Counted from the first letter of the stretch, positions 14,115 through 46,145 are shown. The stretch is DNA of 64,000 nucleotides from Ruditapes philippinarum (GCF_026571515.1 NW_026862342.1:1-64000); one strand, 5' to 3'. Numbers and translations: made by a program. Notes: generated by a model not told the origin, from the letters alone.

Positions 14115-14542
14115 CTAGATTTTTCGCAATTCGTTTATTTTCTGAATTCATTAAATCAATAAATTTTTGCATATTTGAGCGATTAACATAACAATTTGGT
14201 ATAGAAGGTTTCCTTAAATCCTCAAATCACTGTAAAAAGTACATTCCAGAACAAAATGATATTCATCTTCTAACTTGTCACAAAAAATACATTTCCTTTC
14301 ATTTATAGGTGTATTTTTATGTCTTGTTCACCTACCTGTTTCAATAAAAAAGCCTTTGCGAGCAATCTCGCATGCGAGACATACATACATGCAATTTTCT
14401 TACACTTAAAAAATTAAAGTATGGTTGAAATCTATGGTTTGATATATACCTGTTAGAGATTGTTCTGCTAAAGTCATTTAATCTACCAGACCAATTTTGT
14501 AAAAACTGATCTTTAAGTCTTTGCTTAACATTTATTAAGAAC
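14115..14542 (-). pseudogene. Decayed LINE (RTE-X-like) 3' part, left of the transposon insertion
   Basis: KQRLKDQFLQNWSGRLND.SR..; C.KLEDEYHFVLECTFYSDLR; contiguous with 20367-20860 in the uninterrupted paralog at 45235-46145. Confidence 0.75.
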
Positions 14543-14589
14543 AATTGACATTACGCCACCTGTCAATCAAACTGACCAAGCCTTCGCCG

Positions 14590-14741
14590 ATAAGCCAATC
14601 AGCGATCGATATCTGTTCACACTCCCGGAACGCTTCGGTTCCATCCAACCTCCGCCATTTTACTTAGACAAGCTACTTGTCTAGGATAACTAGCAACGGA
14701 TTAAATTCTATAGAAAATATATTGATTTCTGGTAAATAAAT
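14590..14741 (+). promoter_or_regulatory. Putative transposase promoter
   Basis: AGCCAATCAG CCAAT box (core 14595-14599) and a YY1-like CCGCCATTTT (14652-14661) between the TIR and the ATG. Confidence 0.4.
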
Positions 14742-17700
14742 ATGGTGAAACGCTGCCAATTGGGTACATGTAATTCGGACAGCAGATATCCCGACAGACT
14801 GAAGGATGGAATTTATTTTATTCCATTTCCTAAGCCAAAAAGGAATTTAGAGAAGTGTCGTCGGTGGATCAAATCGTGCGGTCGTCCACACGATCAGTTA
14901 AATATCCAAAAAGTTGACGGAAACTATCAACTTTACGTATGTTCTAAGGTAAAATTTAGTTATATCTTACCCATTTTATACAAGTCTACAATGATAATCT
15001 GGTTTTAAGAAATCGATACTCGTCAAAGCCTGATTAAACTACTTTACGTTTATCATATTTGTATCTGGACATTGTAGAAACGTTTTGCTGACATTTATGT
15101 GCGTTTTCCATTCGTTTTGATTATAGTCAGACCAAATAAATTACAAAATATCATGCTATCACGGTAGATTTGTAGGTTAAATTCAAGGCTATATATAGCA
15201 TCAGAACGTAAACATTACAAACTGACAAATCAGAAAGCATCAAAAGCACATGTTCTTAGTAAACAAATCCATATATGGAAAACGGTAAACATGAGCAATT
15301 CTTTGACCTTGACATATCTGTCTGAATGGAGAACCGCTGTCAGGTGCAATGACATGTATTCAGGTACAAAACTAGAATTTCATAAACTTATGACAGATTC
15401 TATATGTATTATGACATTATGTCCAATACATTAAATAGTATTTTCATCAATTTTGCTACACAATATGGGCCACTAATGATTATCATTCTACATTTAATGA
15501 ACATTTTTGTATTTGTTGTGTTTATGTTAGAACCTCAATCATTGTAAACAGTTAATCATTTAAATATAAGGGCCGGCTAACTGTGATTAGTTGGTGATTA
15601 TCTCATGGGATCATTGATGTAACATGTTGAGAATTGAGTACTGCTCGAGCCGGTGCTAGGGGGCTTGATGTTGCATTTATTCATTATCAAAACAGGTCTG
15701 CAATTTTCATGTAATTTTGTTGTGATAACCCTTCCAAGGAATCACTTTGTTTCCAGATTTATGTACTAGAAGGTTGATTTGAGAAAAGCGGGTTAAATTA
15801 TATTGCAGTTTTAATGCAATAAATATCATAATTTCAGCATTTTCCAGAAGGGAAGCCGACGGAGAGTTTCCCAGATCCAGTGCAGGCCAGTTTTTCGGAA
15901 AGACTACTCAAGGTGACTCCTGTAAGACGACCACCGAAACGCCGCCCAGAATCAGAACCTCCAGTATCAAGGAAAAAGAGAAATATACTTTTAGAAATAT
16001 TTTCCAGGTATTTATTTTGCATCAATGCATATTTAAAACAAATAAATTATAAAAAAGATGTATTCACATGAAGTAAAACTGTTAAACATAAATGAAAATA
16101 GTAACATCTTGATAATGCAGTAGTATTTAAAGTAAATTCCTGAGCATAAAATCTGAAGTATACATGTACGTAAATTCAATTTTGCTCTCAAAGTTCTAAG
16201 TGTTTTTGCATTTCACTTTTCATTATAGTGTCAACAATGAGAATATCAATGAACAGCACATAGATAACTCTTCACAGTCAACAAATGAATTTTGTGCTGA
16301 TGTTTCTGTACAAACCGACTTTCATCAAGGTAATTAATTGTTTTCACTTACAGTACAAATTTACAGTAAACACAGCACAGTTTTGAAAGTAATGCTTCCA
16401 TACTCTCCTTGTCCGCCTTAACTCTTATTACGCAAAAATCACACTTTGTGTAAGTCACAAAGTCACACCACTTTGCTCCTGACACAAGCAACTGGCCTTG
16501 AACTTGCCACCAGTAGTTATGGCCCTTTTTCAACTGAACATTGCCATTTATTTCATGTAGGTGAAAATCTCTTTTCTCAAAAACATCTCTTTCCATTGCC
16601 TCTCTTAATTTTAAGTCTCTACACCAGAAAGGACACTTTATTTCTAACAGGCCTGACTGACCATTGCAGCAGACTTTACCATCTGGTGTAGCAGCTATAC
16701 ATGGGAAGAGTGGATTCACCATTAATCCACAGTCATGCACATGGTTTCCTGTCATTTTCATATATTGCATTGAAGCTACTGACTCTTTTGATAACCCATA
16801 CTCTGTTGGACTAGATTTAAATGGTTTACTATTCAAAATACTGTCGACACACTTTTTATTTACATCACTCTTTCTGTTCATAATTTTCCCAAAATTAGAG
16901 GCTGTTAGCCTCTGTTTTCTCTCTTTTTTCCAAAGTTCACTTCCTGATTGTTCTTTGGTATTTAATTCTATATAAACAGCTTCCTGTTTTGAAACTTTAA
17001 CATTCTCAAAATGACTCTGATAGTCTCTTACAATGTCCAAATTTCCAATGTCAGGGGTGGTGGGAAACTCCCAATCAGTGGCACAGGGAGAGCTTGCTCC
17101 TGAGGGCTCTTCTACTGGCATTATCAGGGGAAGCTTAAATGAAAAGAAAACAAAATACAACAGCTGACAATATTTATGCAAATTCGATATGACCATAACA
17201 AAACAATTTAAATGTTTGTAGTTTTAAAGCTGCATGCCTCAAGATGAGCCAAAATATTTAAAGACAATCAATATTGAGAAAAATGCACTTAAGTTTTAAG
17301 ACAGAAAATACATTCAAGATCCAAGTTATATTTTACATGTTATGTGCGTTTAATGACTGATTTTGTAGTATTTAATCACCATATGTCTACAGCATTACTA
17401 ACGCAGTTATGGGTGTTTTAGCATATCTTGACAACTATTTGTTATTTTTTGTGGATTGTAAGTGCTGATTGCAATATGTGAATTACTTTATTTGTTCAAC
17501 TCACAATATTTTACATTTAAATACATTACCAAAATTTTCAAATCTGGCGCCGTGCTGCTTTAAATTTTATGCTATATGTGCTTGTATACACCTTAATGTA
17601 AGATTGTGATATAATGTAATTGCAGGTGTGTCCCCAATTGATCTGCTTACCCTTGCAGCAGAGAATCATGGGTTAAAATCTGAAGTTGACCTTCTGCAAC

Positions 17701-18773
17701 AACAGATATCAACTTTACAGAATCAAGTTGCAGACAAAATTCTGAGAAATGAGGAGTTGTCGCGTGAGAATGAAATATTACGGCAGGAAAATGGAAAGTT
17801 AAAGAAAAGACGTTTTCTGTGAGATATGTTCAACAGTCCAAAATAAAGAACAATTTTAAGTACTATACAGGATTTGTGTACACACAGTTTTTGTGTATCC
17901 TTAACTTTCTTATGCCAAAAAGGGGATTAAATGAGCTGCCATTTAAATTAAAAAAAAACTATATCTAAGGCTTTGAAAATGAAGGCTGAAGACCAGCTGC
18001 TTCTTGTTCTAATGAAACTGAGGCTAAACCTACAGTTTCATCATCTTGGAAATTTATTTAACCTATCACCGCAGGATACTGGTGCGATTTTCCGAGAGTG
18101 GATAAATTACATGTATTATCGGTTTGGTTCGGTTCCACTTTGGCCATCTCGTTCCTCAATAATTGACATGATGCCGAAAACATTCCGAGAAGATTTCCCT
18201 ACAACAATGATAATTCTAGATGGAACAGAAATTAAACTTGAAAAACCTTCCTCACTCCGCTCTCAGAGTCAGTGTTACAGTGACTATAAGTCATGTACTA
18301 CCTTAAAGGGGCTTGTTGGTGTCGATCCTAGGGGCTCATTTACATTTATTTCCATGTTATTTACAGGGGGGACATCAGATAATGAAATTACAGCACGAAG
18401 TGGACTAATGGACATGTTAAAACAGTTGTTAGATTGTGGCAGACTACAGAGAGGGGATGCTGTTATGGTTGACAAGGGATTTCTGATAAGGGAAGACATC
18501 GAAAAACTTGGACTCGAACTGATAATTCCACCTTTCGCTTCATCAACAGAACAAATGCCCCCATCAGATGTTGCACTTACTCAAAAAATTGCTAAACATA
18601 GAATTCATGTTGAAAGAGCTATTTCAAGAGTGAAGAAATTTAAAATTGTTGATCATAGACTGGATCTTACTCTGTACCCATCTATAAACCAAATATGGTT
18701 TTGCTGTTGTTTTTTAACAGGATTCATGCCTTTACTAATTAAAGACCAGGACAATAAATTGTTAATTACCTGA
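14742..18773 (+). CDS. THAP-domain Harbinger/DDE_Tnp_4-like transposase; exons 14742-14948, 15838-16007, 16229-16329, 17626-18773
   Basis: THAP C2CH completed across intron 1 (VCSK|HF). All junctions GT-AG with matching phases 0, 2, 1. Coiled coil, KYYTG, HTH (EDQLLLVLMKLRLNL), catalytic LDGTE / MVDKGF / RIHVERAI. Two compensating 1-nt indels in A runs (~17805, 17950-17958). Confidence 0.9.
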
Positions 18774-20281
18774 TGAGATAGTGTACTACTGATGTGCTGT
18801 GACCCATGAGTTGTATTTGTTGTACCAAAGGGTTTGCTAGCCAAATAGCCTAAAGGAGTGTTATCCATTGACTGAAGGAGCTCTATGTCACTGTCAAGCA
18901 CTTGTATTTTTCTGTAATGATAAATGCAAAATAGTAGCAATGAGAAATTAACTTAGAAACATTCAATACAATATGTTTATTTTAAGAAACTGGACTTAAT
19001 TATTAGTATGTATTAACATATTTGTAGCTTATTTATTCATTACACAAAGTCAATAATCAAAAATTTAATAAATACTAAATGAATGTAATTTTATACATGT
19101 TGTGTTTCTATCAGTATTTATCATATATTTATGAATAAAGCTTATTGCTTAATATAACCATTTGTTGAATGTGGGGACTGACTGTCATATGAGTAAACAT
19201 GACAGTAACACTAGAACAGCTGAACTCATGCCCCAAGGGTGGTGGTGAGGAAGACACCATAACCACTATGCCATTTTCCCCCCTTAAAAACATACCTATT
19301 GTCAATAAATGTTGGAACTAGAGGCCGTCTCTTTCTACCCGTTATACCCGACCTTGACATAGTCACAGTGGTTCAGGACAAATCCTTACACCACGTGGCC
19401 TATCCCATAGTTGAGGTTGACTGGTACAGGCAGGCCGGCTTGGAATGTCAATCAAACCTTCAGTTAACCAGTCGGTCAGTTTTAAAACAACTGCTAAAAC
19501 ATGGGAACATTCCCCAGACATACTGAAATTCATAAAAACATAAGTAATAATGAGTCATTACCTATTAATAAGTAGTATTTTACATTTAATAACTAATTGT
19601 TTATTAAAATTGAAAACGCTGTGATCCGATGCAAGGAAGACCTTTCATAATCCCTACTGTATAAACTGACACATTTTTTATTTACTCTCCTTGGATATAT
19701 GACCCATAGGCTATATAAATGTTCACATCAAGGCTACCAGCATGTTCCTGGCGTTAAAAACTGAAAATGTGTGTGTCGTTTAATTATATAATATAGGTTT
19801 ATTCTGCGCAAAATTATAATCTACTCGGTAGATTTTTATGTTATTTCCGGTATGCGACAGTAAACATGAACTGTGAAAAATTTCCCTAAAAATCATGGAA
19901 ACATCCAAAACATATCGAATGAATCATTATAGAAATAGTGGATTGCATTGACAATAAACTTAATTTATAGTAAAGTATTTTACATTTTTAATGACTTCGT
20001 AAAAATTAAGTTTAATTACCCTGCTTTACATGAACAATGAGCGTCAGAGATGGATTTTTTCCCTACCGCCATGTTGATTGTATGCGGTTTCTCAGATTTT
20101 CTTTGTGAACGGAAAACTGAGGATTTCACATCAATAACCCCATCTCTTCCATGGAAAACCTTTACAGATGCAACATAACTCTCGTTTGCAAACTTTCTGC
20201 TCTGAATTCGTTGCCGAAGCGTTTATATAAGAGAAAATGCTCTCCAAAATCACAAGGTAAATCTCGTAAGCGAGCAGCCAT
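16348..20281 (-). CDS. SWIM-finger plus YqaJ/lambda-exonuclease-like protein; exons 20020-20281, 19296-19522, 18770-18911, 16348-17133
   Basis: SWIM HCSCKAG|MSGECSH split by intron 1; CTSQPQLWDRPRG; YqaJ motifs QS..W..ER..RLTASNFG, ATPDG, LEIKCP, YWWQVQGQL..CDFV. GT-AG junctions with phases 2, 2, 0. Small frameshifts in exons 1 and 2; the start codon is tentative. Confidence 0.87.
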
Positions 20282-20350
20282 ATTGCGAAAGTTGTCTAAG
20301 GTTTAGAAAGACGATACCACGTGACTTAGTGGGCGGAGCGATCCTATCGT
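20282..20350 (-). promoter_or_regulatory. Putative YqaJ-gene promoter
   Basis: E-box CACGTG (20318-20323) and GC box GGGCGG (20331-20336) between the ATG and the right TIR. Confidence 0.35.
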
Positions 20351-20366
20351 TGGCGTAATGTCAATT

Positions 20367-20860
20367 AAGGATCACCAATACTTTGGAAAAGCCAAACTTC
20401 ATTAAAATCAAGAATACAAAATAAATCTCTTAACAATGAGCACCGATTTTTTCTGGAAGGATTATCTGTGATATCTTGTTTAAGAAATAAATATATATTT
20501 TTCTACTATATTTGTTTTCATCTGATTGTAACAACTTGATCCAGAAGTGTATTATAATATAATATCGCATATTTTACAGAGGCAATCTTCCCAACTTCCC
20601 ATAAATAAAACCATTCTGTGTATTCTTTTTAACTCCCAATATACGTTTACAGAAATTCATATGAATACGTTCCACAGATTTGCCTTGATAAATGTAATGT
20701 GAAAACAAGCAAGTAAATTTCTACGTCTTTAAAAACAGATTATACATTACCTGTGTTAACGATCTGTCAGAAGCTTTTAGAATATAACGTTATACAAATT
20801 GTACATCAGCTCATTAACTTTGCTTTTTAGACAAGACATTCATTTATCGCTATTTTGACG
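20367..20860 (-). pseudogene. Decayed LINE, portion right of the transposon insertion
   Basis: IYGKLGRLPL-like motif; matches 45667-46145. Confidence 0.7.
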
Positions 20861-45234: not shown

Positions 45235-46145
45235 AGATTTTTCGCAATTCGTTTATTTTCTGAATTCATTAAATCAATAAATTTTTGCATATTTGAGCGA
45301 TTAACATAATAATTTGGTATAGAAAGTTTCCTTAAATCCTCAAATCACTGTAAAAAGTACATTCCAGAACAAAATGATATTCATCTTCTAACTTGTCACA
45401 AAAATACATTTCCTTTCATTTATATGTGTATTTTTAGGTCTTGTTCACCGACCTGTTTCAATAAAAAGCCTATGCGAGCAAACTCGCAGGCGAGACATAC
45501 ATACACGCAATTTTCGTACACTTAAAAAATTAAAGTATGGTTGAAATCTATGGTTTGATATATACCTGCAAGAGAGAGATTGCTCTGCTAAAGTCATTTA
45601 ATCTACCAGACCAATTTGGTAAAAACTGATCTTTAAGTCTTTGCTTAACATTTATAAAGAACAATTTAGGATCACCATTACTTTGGAAAAGCCAAACTTC
45701 ATTAAAACCACGTATACATAATAAATCTCTTAACAATAAGCACCGATTTTTTCTGGAAGGATTATCTGTGATATCTAGTTTAAGAAATAATTTATATTTT
45801 TCTACTATACTTGTTTTCATCTGATTGTAACAACTTGATCCAGAAATATAATATCGCATATTTTACAAAGGCAATCTTCCCAACTTCCCATAAATAAAAC
45901 CATTCTGTATATTCTTTTTAACTCCCAATATACATTTACAGAAATTCATATGAATTCGTTCCACAGATTTGCCTTGATAAATGTAATGTGAAAACAAGCA
46001 AGTAAATTTCTACGTCTTTAAAAACAGATTATCCATTGCCTGTGTTAACGATCTGCCAGAAGCTTTTAGAATATAACGTCATACAAATTGCATATCAGCT
46101 CATTATCTTTGCTTTTTAGGCAAAACATTCATTTATCGCTATTTT
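45235..46145 (-). pseudogene. Uninterrupted decayed LINE (RTE-X-like) containing the empty transposon site
   Basis: ORF 45548-45859 (LLRDLL..GFNEVWLFQ..KLFFINVKQRLKDQF..NWSGRL) reads through the site. Confidence 0.75.

Follow-up and report, generated by a model that had tools for sequence, protein, structure and literature searches.

A transcribed ISL2EU transposon of Ruditapes philippinarum carries two reciprocally nested antisense genes

Results

Boundaries and gene content of the element

The window analysed here is a stretch of 64,000 nucleotides from Ruditapes philippinarum (GCF_026571515.1 NW_026862342.1:1-64000). Between 14546 and 20363 it holds a 5.8-kb copy of an ISL2EU element, a cut-and-paste DNA transposon that is low-copy in this genome and carries one gene on each strand (Table 1). 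A perfect inverted repeat of 16 nt (14543-14558 and 20351-20366) is read as a 13-nt TIR together with flanking AT; the flanks take the form A-AT-element-AT-T, and elsewhere in the window lies a paralogous empty site (45463-45854, 93% identical), with a single AT (about 45665) at the corresponding point. An AT TSD is also found in family 2 and in L069, both related and likewise interleaved, whose TIRs start with GG, whereas those of the present family start with TG; ISL2EU TIRs usually begin with GG, in a wording that allows exceptions (PMC4482050). An earlier note on this DNA had taken the pairing of a transposase with a YqaJ nuclease as the mark of ISL2EU. The domains, the A/AT/T target and the AT TSD agree with the published definition (PMC4482050, PMC4122938, PMC9179366), and on these grounds the assignment of 14546-20363 as an ISL2EU two-gene transposon, within the superfamily PHIS (PIF/Harbinger-ISL2EU-Spy), is supported.

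The plus-strand gene encodes a transposase of 549 codons in four exons, built of THAP, coiled-coil, HTH and DDE parts. Pfam recognises THAP in 14742-14948 (+) (E 1.5e-5; 26.1 bits against a Pfam cut-off of 23.9), which aligns with the THAP of full-length relatives, as well as HTH_Tnp_4 (E 8.6e-15) and DDE_Tnp_4 (E 6.6e-41) in 17973-18770 (+), and the DDE domain keeps the conserved D, D and E columns. Exon 1 is 54-74% identical with exon 1 of relatives and exon 2 is 51% identical with its L062 homologue, while intron 1 holds a high-copy nested repeat (about 15625-15760). The RefSeq model P0001 of family 2 uses four homologous transposase exons, including a CST/HF junction homologous to intron 1. 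Moreover, full-length THAP-to-DDE ORFs of 508-517 aa occur on Logan contigs of only 1.7-2.8 kb, which are spliced mRNAs of relatives.

The minus-strand gene encodes a nuclease of 475 codons, also in four exons, in which a SWIM zinc finger is fused to a YqaJ (lambda-exonuclease-like) domain. YqaJ is recognised by Pfam in 16351-17133 (-) (E 2.6e-16), and exon 4 additionally matches Viral_alk_exo (E 1.7e-7). Exon 2 is here corrected to 19522-19296 and is collinear with full-length Pecten and Glandiceps models; all four minus-strand exons can be aligned in order with full-length SWIM-YqaJ models from Pecten, Haliotis and Glandiceps (477-487 aa). Identity amounts to 33-45% with relatives for exon 1, and to 42% with L062 and 38% with family 2 for exon 3. 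Intron 1 parts the SWIM finger (CSCKAG / MSGECSH), a junction needed alike in all relatives. Exon 3 of the nuclease overlaps the transposase stop codon.

Table 1. Features of the element, with positions counted in the window
Feature	Position	Strand	Remarks
Left TSD copy (AT)	14544-14545		flanks; single AT in empty site
Left TIR	14546-14558	+	13 nt, TGACATTACGCCA; perfect complement of 20351-20363
Transposase exon 1, coding part	14742-14948	+	first 69 aa of THAP; ends ..VCSK before His of C-x2-H
Transposase intron 1, predicted	14949-15837	+	889 nt; GT..AG; frame continuity
Transposase exon 2	15838-16007	+	THAP end and basic linker; frame check
Transposase intron 2	16008-16228	+	221 nt; GT..AG; spliced contig in X1
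Transposase exon 3	16229-16329	+	101 nt; both junctions confirmed by contig joints
Transposase intron 3	16330-17625	+	1296 nt; GT..AG; encloses whole nuclease catalytic exon
Nuclease exon 4, coding part incl. stop	16348-17133	-	YqaJ domain; ORF of 282 aa, open in this copy
Nuclease intron 3	17134-18769	-	1636 nt; CT..AC on + = GT..AG on -; spliced in X1 and X2
Nested interspersed repeat	17247-17603		about 357 bp; between the two back-to-back exon-4 acceptors
Transposase exon 4, coding part	17626-18773	+	coiled coil, HTH_Tnp_4, DDE_Tnp_4; stop codon 18771-18773
Nuclease exon 3	18770-18911	-	142 nt; both junctions confirmed in X1 and X2
Nuclease intron 2	18912-19295	-	384 nt; spliced in X1 and X2, shorter side 142 nt
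Nuclease exon 2	19296-19522	-	second SWIM half (..GECSH..); frame check
Nuclease intron 1, predicted	19523-20019	-	497 nt; GT..AG; frame continuity
Nuclease exon 1	20020-20281	-	first SWIM half; start codon at 20281
Right TIR	20351-20363	-	perfect inverted-repeat partner of 14546-14558
Right TSD copy (AT)	20364-20365		flanks; single AT in empty site

Each catalytic exon is nested in the last intron of its partner

The six junctions had been described as GT-AG and phase-consistent, and this proved right: GT..AG ends are found at 6/6 predicted introns, and both coding sequences come out exactly in frame (1650 and 1428 nt) when the four indels known from siblings and transcripts are allowed for. 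Spliced contigs were taken from the public assemblies X1 and X2, which stem from two studies and whose runs are both presumed to be RNA. Two runs of raw RNA reads, X22 and X24, are unstranded and hold too few element reads for junctions. The contigs join the predicted exons exactly, with the correct strand-specific dinucleotides, at four of the six introns (16008-16228 and 16330-17625 on the plus strand, 17134-18769 and 18912-19295 on the minus strand). The four-exon models are pieced together from short contigs, which speak for single joints rather than for whole molecules. Joint 16007/16229 in X1 confirms the 3' junction of transposase exon 2. The plus-strand joint 16329/17626, seen in X2 record 9 with a shorter side of 189 nt, spans the YqaJ exon 16348-17133, which the earlier note had placed within transposase intron 3, and the minus-strand joint 18770/17133 spans the DDE exon 17626-18769. 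Because X1 and X2 contigs join across them on the right strand, both mutually nesting introns are real. The locus is thus confirmed as a reciprocally nested antisense pair: the last intron of either gene encloses the catalytic exon of its partner, and both introns are removed. The DDE exon had been placed in nuclease intron 3 save for its last 4 coding nt; the spliced contigs bear out this enclosure, but 17626-18773 is not one open frame.

For the first introns (14949-15837 on the plus strand and 20019-19523 on the minus strand), no joint was found in the X1 and X2 contigs, which run through them; the earlier prediction is borne out by joints at four introns, including both crossing ones, and the two first introns were not seen spliced. 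X1 record 1 spans 14655-15057, from transposase exon 1 into intron 1, and X1 record 6 and X2 record 12 pass from exon 2 into nuclease intron 1 at full depth (19296-19913). Splicing of both first introns, which split the zinc fingers, is predicted from their GT..AG ends, the reading frames and the junctions of relatives.

X1 records 3 (16003-16256) and 4 (16227-17133) run through transposase exon 3 at a depth of 35-54, and nuclease exon 4 is covered by X1 record 4 and X2 record 10. Judging from contig extents, the transcribed last exons appear to outrun their coding parts, and each 3'UTR would then overlap exon 3 of the other gene. Spliced transcripts of both strands occur together in the same RNA samples, and convergent transcription over about 3 kb is therefore real; the transcriptional collision that the earlier note derived from the layout may accompany it. 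The 3' splice sites of the last exons stand back to back mid-element, 492 nt apart here compared with 31-100 nt in relatives, the wider spacing being due to a nested repeat inserted between them; in ten representatives, one of these acceptors carries CTG(A/T)AA and the opposite one (T)CAG.

Damage and nested repeats

This copy is defective and decaying. Four private indels, absent from sibling copies and RNA contigs, break both of its genes. Transposase exon 4 contains a stop at 17820 and two frame shifts: 24-25 nt are missing after 17811, and the A run at 17950-17958 is one nucleotide too long. By comparison, the X1 contig has 25 more nt following 17811 and an A run shorter by one at 17950, and sibling C8160 differs from this copy in the same two ways. 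Nuclease exon 2 is broken by a 7-nt gap at 19369 (frame change at 19366-19369), the missing nucleotides being present in RNA contigs and in sibling C4107, and nuclease exon 1 by a 4-nt gap at 20220 that leaves its coding split over two frames, these nucleotides being present in RNA contigs and in siblings C4107 and C9205. Near-identical intact versions are transcribed in other individuals. The repeat nested between the acceptors shows very high read depth, is missing from C8160 and has many genomic loci at 82-87% identity among the best 40 of 6640 first-look candidates scored. In C4107, a 1764-bp internal deletion takes parts of both catalytic exons. It had been proposed that the interlock ties the two genes physically, since an internal deletion would probably strike both; this does not follow from the interlock in particular, because a central deletion would strike both genes just as well in the ordinary tail-to-tail layout.

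Interleaving marks a clade of ISL2EU families

The interleaved layout was found in 12 of the 30 own-genome loci examined, belonging to three families, and the same exon order is also seen in L061, L062 and L063. It further occurs in 17 metagenome contigs, at least two of them from other species: in ten, a YqaJ exon in antisense precedes the DDE exon on its upstream side, and in seven more an antisense SWIM exon comes directly after the DDE exon. L069 contains a complete 4.7-kb element with TIR and AT TSD, and L069 and L067 share only 72-75% DNA identity with this genome. The related families comprise multiple copies that are 90-96% identical and have TIRs and TSDs of their own, while more distant ISL2EU families of the same genome carry their genes tail to tail. 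The trees were made exclusively from own-genome loci, metagenome loci and 'uncharacterized' database proteins. In the DDE tree, the interleaved loci form a single branch (100/100; SH-aLRT 100), as they do in the nuclease tree (support 85), and all convergent loci fall outside in both. Exon order in other copies and the phylogeny had been named in the earlier note as a way to learn whether interleaving marks a clade; that it is conserved in related families and marks one is supported. The layout is predicted from the tree to occur also in named bivalves, gastropods, a hemichordate, amphioxus and fish, the named clade members (Saccostrea, Pinctada, Pecten, Glandiceps, Branchiostoma and Fundulus) being assigned it by their tree position.

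Discussion

Origin of the layout and alternative readings

We consider it highly probable that the locus is one ISL2EU copy with two inward-reading, interleaved genes, and that this layout arose once and was inherited by a clade of families. The plus- and minus-strand genes read inward from opposite ends of the element, and their long catalytic last exons have traded positions compared with ISL2EU elements of the ordinary tail-to-tail type. Each last exon sits in antisense within the last intron of the partner gene, and therefore each pre-mRNA must be transcribed through the catalytic exon of the other. In its origin, the two central exons could have been exchanged, for example, by duplication of a central segment and subsequent loss of the outer copies. 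For transposition, the DDE domain would cleave the element at its TIRs, and the nuclease would presumably serve as an accessory factor.

A local rearrangement or assembly artefact of one copy might have been suspected from the damage at this locus (four indels and nested repeats) and from the very few family copies in the assembly. It is refuted by the sibling fragments C4107 and C8160, which show the same order, by two further families of the genome and metagenome contigs of other species that share it, and by the agreement of spliced RNA with the layout, and we give it practically no chance. We likewise attach next to no weight to a domesticated host gene pair in place of a mobile element: in its favour, both genes are transcribed, but the perfect TIRs, the AT TSD and the paralogous empty site speak against it, as do the several copies, including a deletion derivative, and the related families with their own multiple copies and termini. 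Somewhat more can be said for the view that the zinc-finger first exons lie outside the functional mRNAs and that, with internal starts, the true units are two head-to-head genes, one for DDE alone and one for YqaJ alone. The unjoined, read-through first introns fit this view, and the JGI gene call P0121 starts the nuclease at a Met inside exon 4. We nevertheless judge it quite improbable: the two crossing joints tie both catalytic exons to upstream exons, an unbroken frame from the first ATGs onward requires the predicted first introns, and the THAP C-x2-H and SWIM CxC..CxH motifs are completed only across the first-intron junctions. The position of the split in the zinc fingers is, moreover, common to all families. 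Contigs of cDNA size from relatives carry complete THAP-DDE ORFs, and there are complete SWIM-YqaJ models as well.

The interleaving could also be functional in itself, if convergent transcription, complementarity between 3'UTR and exon 3, and poorly spliced first introns acted as a built-in brake that couples and limits production of both proteins, its means being transcriptional interference, double-stranded RNA that enters siRNA or piRNA pathways, and tissue-restricted splicing. Both genes are indeed expressed and spliced side by side, contig extents suggest that the nuclease mRNA reaches about 16003, across transposase exon 3, and that the transposase mRNA passes 18911, across nuclease exon 3, and the dominant contigs retain both first introns; many families have retained the layout although they are deeply diverged, with protein identity down to about 50%. 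Gene order within a transposon is, however, expected to persist by descent alone. Tight overlap is not universal, because about 500 nt separate the transposase stop from nuclease exon 3 in family 2, and tail-to-tail families thrive in the same genome. We hold such a brake to be doubtful; a regulatory role of the antisense overlap is possible, but we do not favour it over neutral inheritance.

Comparison with known systems

The clam element has in common with published ISL2EU elements (PMC4482050, PMC4122938, PMC9179366) an AT TSD in an A/AT/T target, short TIRs, a THAP, HTH and DDE transposase gene, a second gene for a YqaJ exonuclease, an animal host and a length of about 5 kb. These papers speak only of 'two ORFs', and we found in them no statement on the orientation, introns or nesting of the genes; no prior description of the interleaved layout was found in the searchable literature either. 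The clam element differs from the usual ISL2EU in its TG-starting TIR, and from the more distant families of its own genome in carrying its genes interleaved instead of tail to tail.

MuDR of maize, whose mudrA and mudrB genes are convergently transcribed from the two TIRs, is likewise a two-gene DNA transposon with inward-reading promoters at both ends. Its genes are, however, simply convergent, with adjoining 3' ends and no exons in the introns of the partner, and both its superfamily and its accessory protein are different. The P element of Drosophila encodes a THAP-domain transposase and retains one intron in a tissue-regulated manner, and read-through of the first intron in the clam element would likewise yield a truncated THAP-only product. 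In contrast, the P element has only one gene, lacks an antisense partner and belongs to another catalytic family, and regulated splicing in the clam element is a suspicion only.

Among cellular genes, 'Exon and intron sharing in opposite direction' is described for Pou5f1/Tcf19 (PMC8493703), and overlapping genes have been surveyed (PMC2330155). Such interleaved host pairs similarly place exons within the transcribed span of the opposite-strand partner, but are cellular and mostly not conserved, whereas the clam element presents an inherited mobile architecture that involves both catalytic exons.

The interlocked genes and the ends of the element

The four-exon models of the THAP-HTH-DDE transposase and the antisense SWIM-YqaJ nuclease are listed in the table; homology searches were run exon by exon, and the reading frames were checked piecewise by script. 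The earlier note had placed the YqaJ exon entirely within transposase intron 3 and all but the last 4 nt of the DDE exon within nuclease intron 3, and the coordinates agree with this layout; GT..AG, claimed for all six introns, was likewise found at each of them in the window sequence. The first intron of either gene divides a zinc finger, namely the C-x2-H of the THAP domain (..VCSK|HF..) and the SWIM finger (..CSCKAG|MSGECSH..). An end of nuclease exon 2 near 19390 and a start of exon 3 at 18913 were also considered, and were replaced by 19522-19296 and 18911-18770 on the basis of RNA joints and homology.

Features of the ISL2EU element in the window, with the contig sets (X1, X2) in which a spliced joint was found
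Feature	Positions	Strand	Basis	Spliced joint
Transposase exon 1	14742-14948	+	gene model	
Transposase exon 2	15838-16007	+	gene model	
Transposase exon 3	16229-16329	+	gene model	
Transposase exon 4	17626-18773	+	gene model	
Transposase intron 1	14949-15837	+	GT..AG	
Transposase intron 2	16008-16228	+	GT..AG	X1
Transposase intron 3	16330-17625	+	GT..AG	X2 (shorter side 189 nt)
Nuclease exon 1	20281-20020	-	gene model	
Nuclease exon 2	19522-19296	-	gene model	
Nuclease exon 3	18911-18770	-	gene model	
Nuclease exon 4	17133-16348	-	gene model	
Nuclease intron 1	20019-19523	-	GT..AG	
Nuclease intron 2	19295-18912	-	GT..AG	X1 and X2 (shorter side 142 nt)
Nuclease intron 3	18769-17134	-	GT..AG	X1 and X2
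THAP	14742-14948	+	Pfam	
HTH_Tnp_4 and DDE_Tnp_4	17973-18770	+	Pfam	
YqaJ	16351-17133	-	Pfam	

A perfect inverted repeat at both ends of window 14546-20363 reads as a 13-nt terminal inverted repeat (TIR) with AT on either flank. An element-free duplicate of the flanking DNA, 93% identical and with a single AT at the junction, lies at window 45463-45854; it reveals a segmental duplication within the window and acts as a paralogous empty site. Since this duplicate has one AT, the element boundaries and a 2-bp duplication in an A|AT|T target are fixed, the latter being a hallmark of ISL2EU (PMC4482050). The TIR of the window family starts with TG instead of the usual GG, while every other testable defining feature of ISL2EU was found in the window element. 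A domesticated gene pair was rejected on the grounds of the TIRs, the AT target site duplication (TSD) and the paralogous empty site. The window DNA is AT-rich and eukaryotic in character (GC of ~0.33; assembly of 1.4 Gb), and an Rfam scan of the element matched zero RNA families.

The last-exon 3' splice sites of the two genes stand back to back. In a second family of the same genome (family 2), the spacer between the acceptors is an AT-rich stretch of 31 nt that starts with CTGAAAT and ends with ATTTCAG, and the CTG(A/T)AA ... (T)CAG pair recurs in ten representatives at a spacing of 31 to ~100 nt. At such a spacing, each acceptor would be expected to have its branch point and pyrimidine tract at or within the opening codons of the exon that belongs to the other gene. 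Between the two exon-4 acceptors of the window copy, at 17247-17603 and 22 nt upstream of the transposase acceptor, sits a ~357-bp high-copy interspersed repeat, bracketed by the short direct repeats AAGATG / AAGATTG and not present in the sibling copy on contig C8160; many genomic matches at 82-87% identity were seen among the best 40 of 6640 candidates scored. A second short repeat occupies window ~15625-15760 in transposase intron 1 and also occurs in the C4107 sibling. RNA read depth over it is very high, with many loose read ends, and X1 record 2 passes from it (15699) directly into exon 2, so this repeat may be a start point for some transcripts or be read through by them.

Transcripts and the state of the window copy

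Two Logan contig sets from different studies (X1 and X2, classed as RNA by guess, with contigs that carry no strand) and two raw RNA runs (X22 and X24) were mapped to window 14480-20430. Spliced contigs of X1 and X2 join the predicted exons at four of the six introns, both crossing introns included, and the dinucleotides at all four joints are those expected for the respective strand. It follows that real transcripts lose the two crossing introns, and that transposase and nuclease are both expressed in the same samples. No spliced joint for either first intron was present in the X1 and X2 contigs: X1 record 1 (14655-15057) crosses the exon-1 donor of the transposase into the intron, and X1 record 6 and X2 record 12 pass from nuclease exon 2 through intron 1. 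This shows that the unspliced first-intron form dominates in these samples and does not disprove splicing itself, because contigs drop minor forms. The raw runs gave no junction reads at a low, unstranded element coverage made up mostly of reads of nested repeats, and are neutral toward the contig joints.

Contig extents and depths suggest that the nuclease mRNA extends to ~16003, over transposase exon 3, and that the transposase mRNA extends beyond nuclease exon 3 to ~19090; an AATAAA lies on the minus strand at 16018-16013 and another at 19067-19072, near the inferred transposase end. Past the exon-1 donor, exon-level RNA coverage lasts ~110-130 nt and then drops (X1 record 1; X22 depth; window 14949-15160), and a further AATAAA is found at 15135-15140; premature polyadenylation in transposase intron 1 could yield a short THAP-only product of 88 codons. 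Contig depth over the nuclease (16003-17133) was 53.8 vs 10 over the transposase (17709-18799) in X1 and 15.7 vs 5.3 in X2, that is, ~3-5x in both assemblies, contig depth being a poor measure of expression.

In the window copy, the last transposase exon holds a stop at 17820 and two frame changes, and nuclease exons 1 and 2 hold one frame change each. The RNA contigs differ from the window at four places, with 25 extra nt behind 17811 and one A fewer at 17950 in transposase exon 4, and 7 extra nt behind 19369 and 4 extra nt behind 20220 in the nuclease exons. Taken together, the sibling copies on C8160 and C4107 show all four differences, and the 4-nt one also occurs in that on C9205. Counting them, the coding sequence of the transposase comes to 1650 nt (549 aa) and that of the nuclease to 1428 nt (475 aa), both with zero internal stops, and this exact closure of both frames supports the two predicted first introns. 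The window copy is thus in decay, while intact versions nearly identical to it are transcribed from other sites or in other individuals. At window 16923, the nuclease-exon contig of X1 carries an additional T that is absent in X2; the transcribed exon would thus be frameshifted in that individual or copy.

The assembly holds one full copy of the window family, one derivative and fragments. The derivative (G000:C4107:215675-219755; loci L002 and L003) is 97-98% identical and retains the 7-nt and 4-nt stretches missing from the window copy; its 1764-bp internal deletion, corresponding to window 16911-18674, takes parts of both catalytic exons and renders it non-autonomous.

Distribution and descent of the layout

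Whole-genome protein searches with the DDE exon and the YqaJ exon returned ~145 matches each. Wherever the DDE exon is at least ~49% identical to that of the window, YqaJ sits upstream of it on the opposite strand, and the more decayed C12743 and C15782 are likewise interleaved (14 interleaved contigs); in all more distant families where both exons were found, YqaJ is downstream, tail to tail. Wider flanks were covered in three 10-kb regions of this genome. Searches (tblastn) with every exon revealed the complete order THAP(+), YqaJ(-), coiled coil-HTH-DDE(+), nuclease exon 3(-), SWIM exon 2(-), SWIM exon 1(-) in a 71% family (L062) and in family 2 (L061/L063, ~50%). Several copies of family 2 are 90-96% identical, with intact long ORFs, the TIR GGACCGTTCCG and an AT TSD. 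The RefSeq protein P0001 of Ruditapes philippinarum, which matches a copy of a sister family in this genome at 97% identity, has four transposase exons homologous to the predicted ones, CST|HF junction included. The family-2 copy L063 (G000:C5222) lacks an 827-bp segment with transposase exons 2 and 3 that is present in L061 (C6232); it is a further internal-deletion derivative whose nuclease gene remains open.

Among the 46 loci returned by a metagenome scan, ten carry YqaJ in antisense, upstream of DDE, and in most of these one or more antisense SWIM exons follow downstream; in seven others an antisense SWIM exon comes directly after the DDE exon, and two are tail to tail. Locus L069:38-4759 (Ga0224511_10043464) is a complete interleaved element of ~4.7 kb with every exon open and an AT TSD. 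Its TIR core GGACCGTTCC is the same as that of family 2, with coding DNA only ~75% identical, which may point to horizontal spread. Both L069 and L067 come from other species, since they are at most 72-75% DNA-identical to anything in this genome; direct reading of the layout across species was confined to such unnamed metagenome contigs. A dozen or so near-identical copies of an ISL2EU transposase of the tail-to-tail type, 40% identical to that of the window, were found on long contigs of WLWD01 (L076-L087, L097), an assembly catalogued under metagenomes that resembles a eukaryotic genome. A local rearrangement or an assembly artefact, which would confine the layout to this one copy, was rejected, given the same order in L062, L061/L063 and the metagenome contigs and the agreement of spliced RNA.

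A DDE tree built from 30 loci of this genome unites the 12 interleaved ones on one branch (100/100), with one state change. A 56-row DDE tree places 17 of 17 interleaved loci on one side of a branch with SH-aLRT 100 and 14 of 14 tail-to-tail loci on the opposite side, and the nuclease tree returns the identical split (SH-aLRT 85) and the same two sub-clades. That interleaving marks a clade, a question raised in the earlier note, is thus answered in the same way by both genes: the layout has a single origin, and the two genes have stayed together ever since. Twenty named database proteins (bivalves, gastropods, Glandiceps, Branchiostoma, Fundulus) fall on the interleaved side of the 56-row tree, and from this position Saccostrea, Pinctada, Pecten, Glandiceps, Branchiostoma, Fundulus and others are predicted to share the layout. 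A plausible, hypothetical route to it starts from a tail-to-tail ancestor whose central segment, with DDE and YqaJ, was duplicated, the outer copies being lost afterwards.

Significance and possible working

The published accounts consulted describe ISL2EU as 'two ORFs', with no statement found on orientation or introns (PMC4482050, PMC4122938, PMC9179366). In the searchable literature, with Repbase and Dfam outside its scope, no account was found of how the ISL2EU genes are oriented, nested or interleaved, and a literature search for interleaved or nested genes in transposons found nothing. Interleaved pairs of host genes are already known (PMC8493703, PMC2330155); those are cellular genes, whereas here interleaving is the inherited architecture of a mobile element, for which we found no precedent. 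The layout is an oddity, but a real one that is expressed, conserved and open to testing in its consequences; it answers no long-standing question. ISL2EU elements are widespread in animals, while the role of the nuclease and the regulation of the two genes are unknown. A clade whose genes are physically interlocked, each transcribed through the other's catalytic exon, offers a natural experiment, with the tail-to-tail sister families of the same genome as ready controls. It is relevant to transcriptional interference, to the splicing of overlapping antisense pre-mRNAs with acceptors a few tens of bases apart, and to how two-gene transposons hold their genes together and balanced. Annotators and gene predictors that assume one gene per strand interval will split or overlook such elements; many of the database models found here cover the last exon alone.

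By analogy with its families, the element would transpose as PIF/Harbinger-type elements do, with the THAP and HTH regions recognising the ends and DDE catalysis cutting and pasting at A|AT|T. The SWIM-YqaJ protein, 5'-3' exonuclease-like, would be an accessory factor that perhaps helps to process the ends or to repair the donor gap; the role of the second ISL2EU protein is stated as unknown in PMC4482050. Expression is what sets the element apart: with a promoter at either end, transcription converges over ~3 kb, and each pre-mRNA splices away the catalytic exon of the other gene.

Whether the interlock does anything for the element is a separate matter. We give more weight to the neutral inheritance of a tolerated exon exchange than to a regulatory role exerted by interference, by double-stranded RNA or by gating the splicing of the first introns, for which the chances seem rather slim. 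It is more doubtful still that interleaving is an evolved self-limiting circuit, as opposed to a frozen accident, in an ISL2EU clade across several animal phyla. Such a circuit would make each gene dependent on, and throttled by, the other, by way of the 3' splice sites that stand back to back and of the unavoidable convergent transcription; reciprocal exon-3/3'UTR duplexes would supply small-RNA pathways, and the retained first introns that split the zinc fingers would gate the output of full-length protein. In the P element, intron retention gates the production of full-length protein, and first-intron retention would, if the circuit exists, be a similar gate here.
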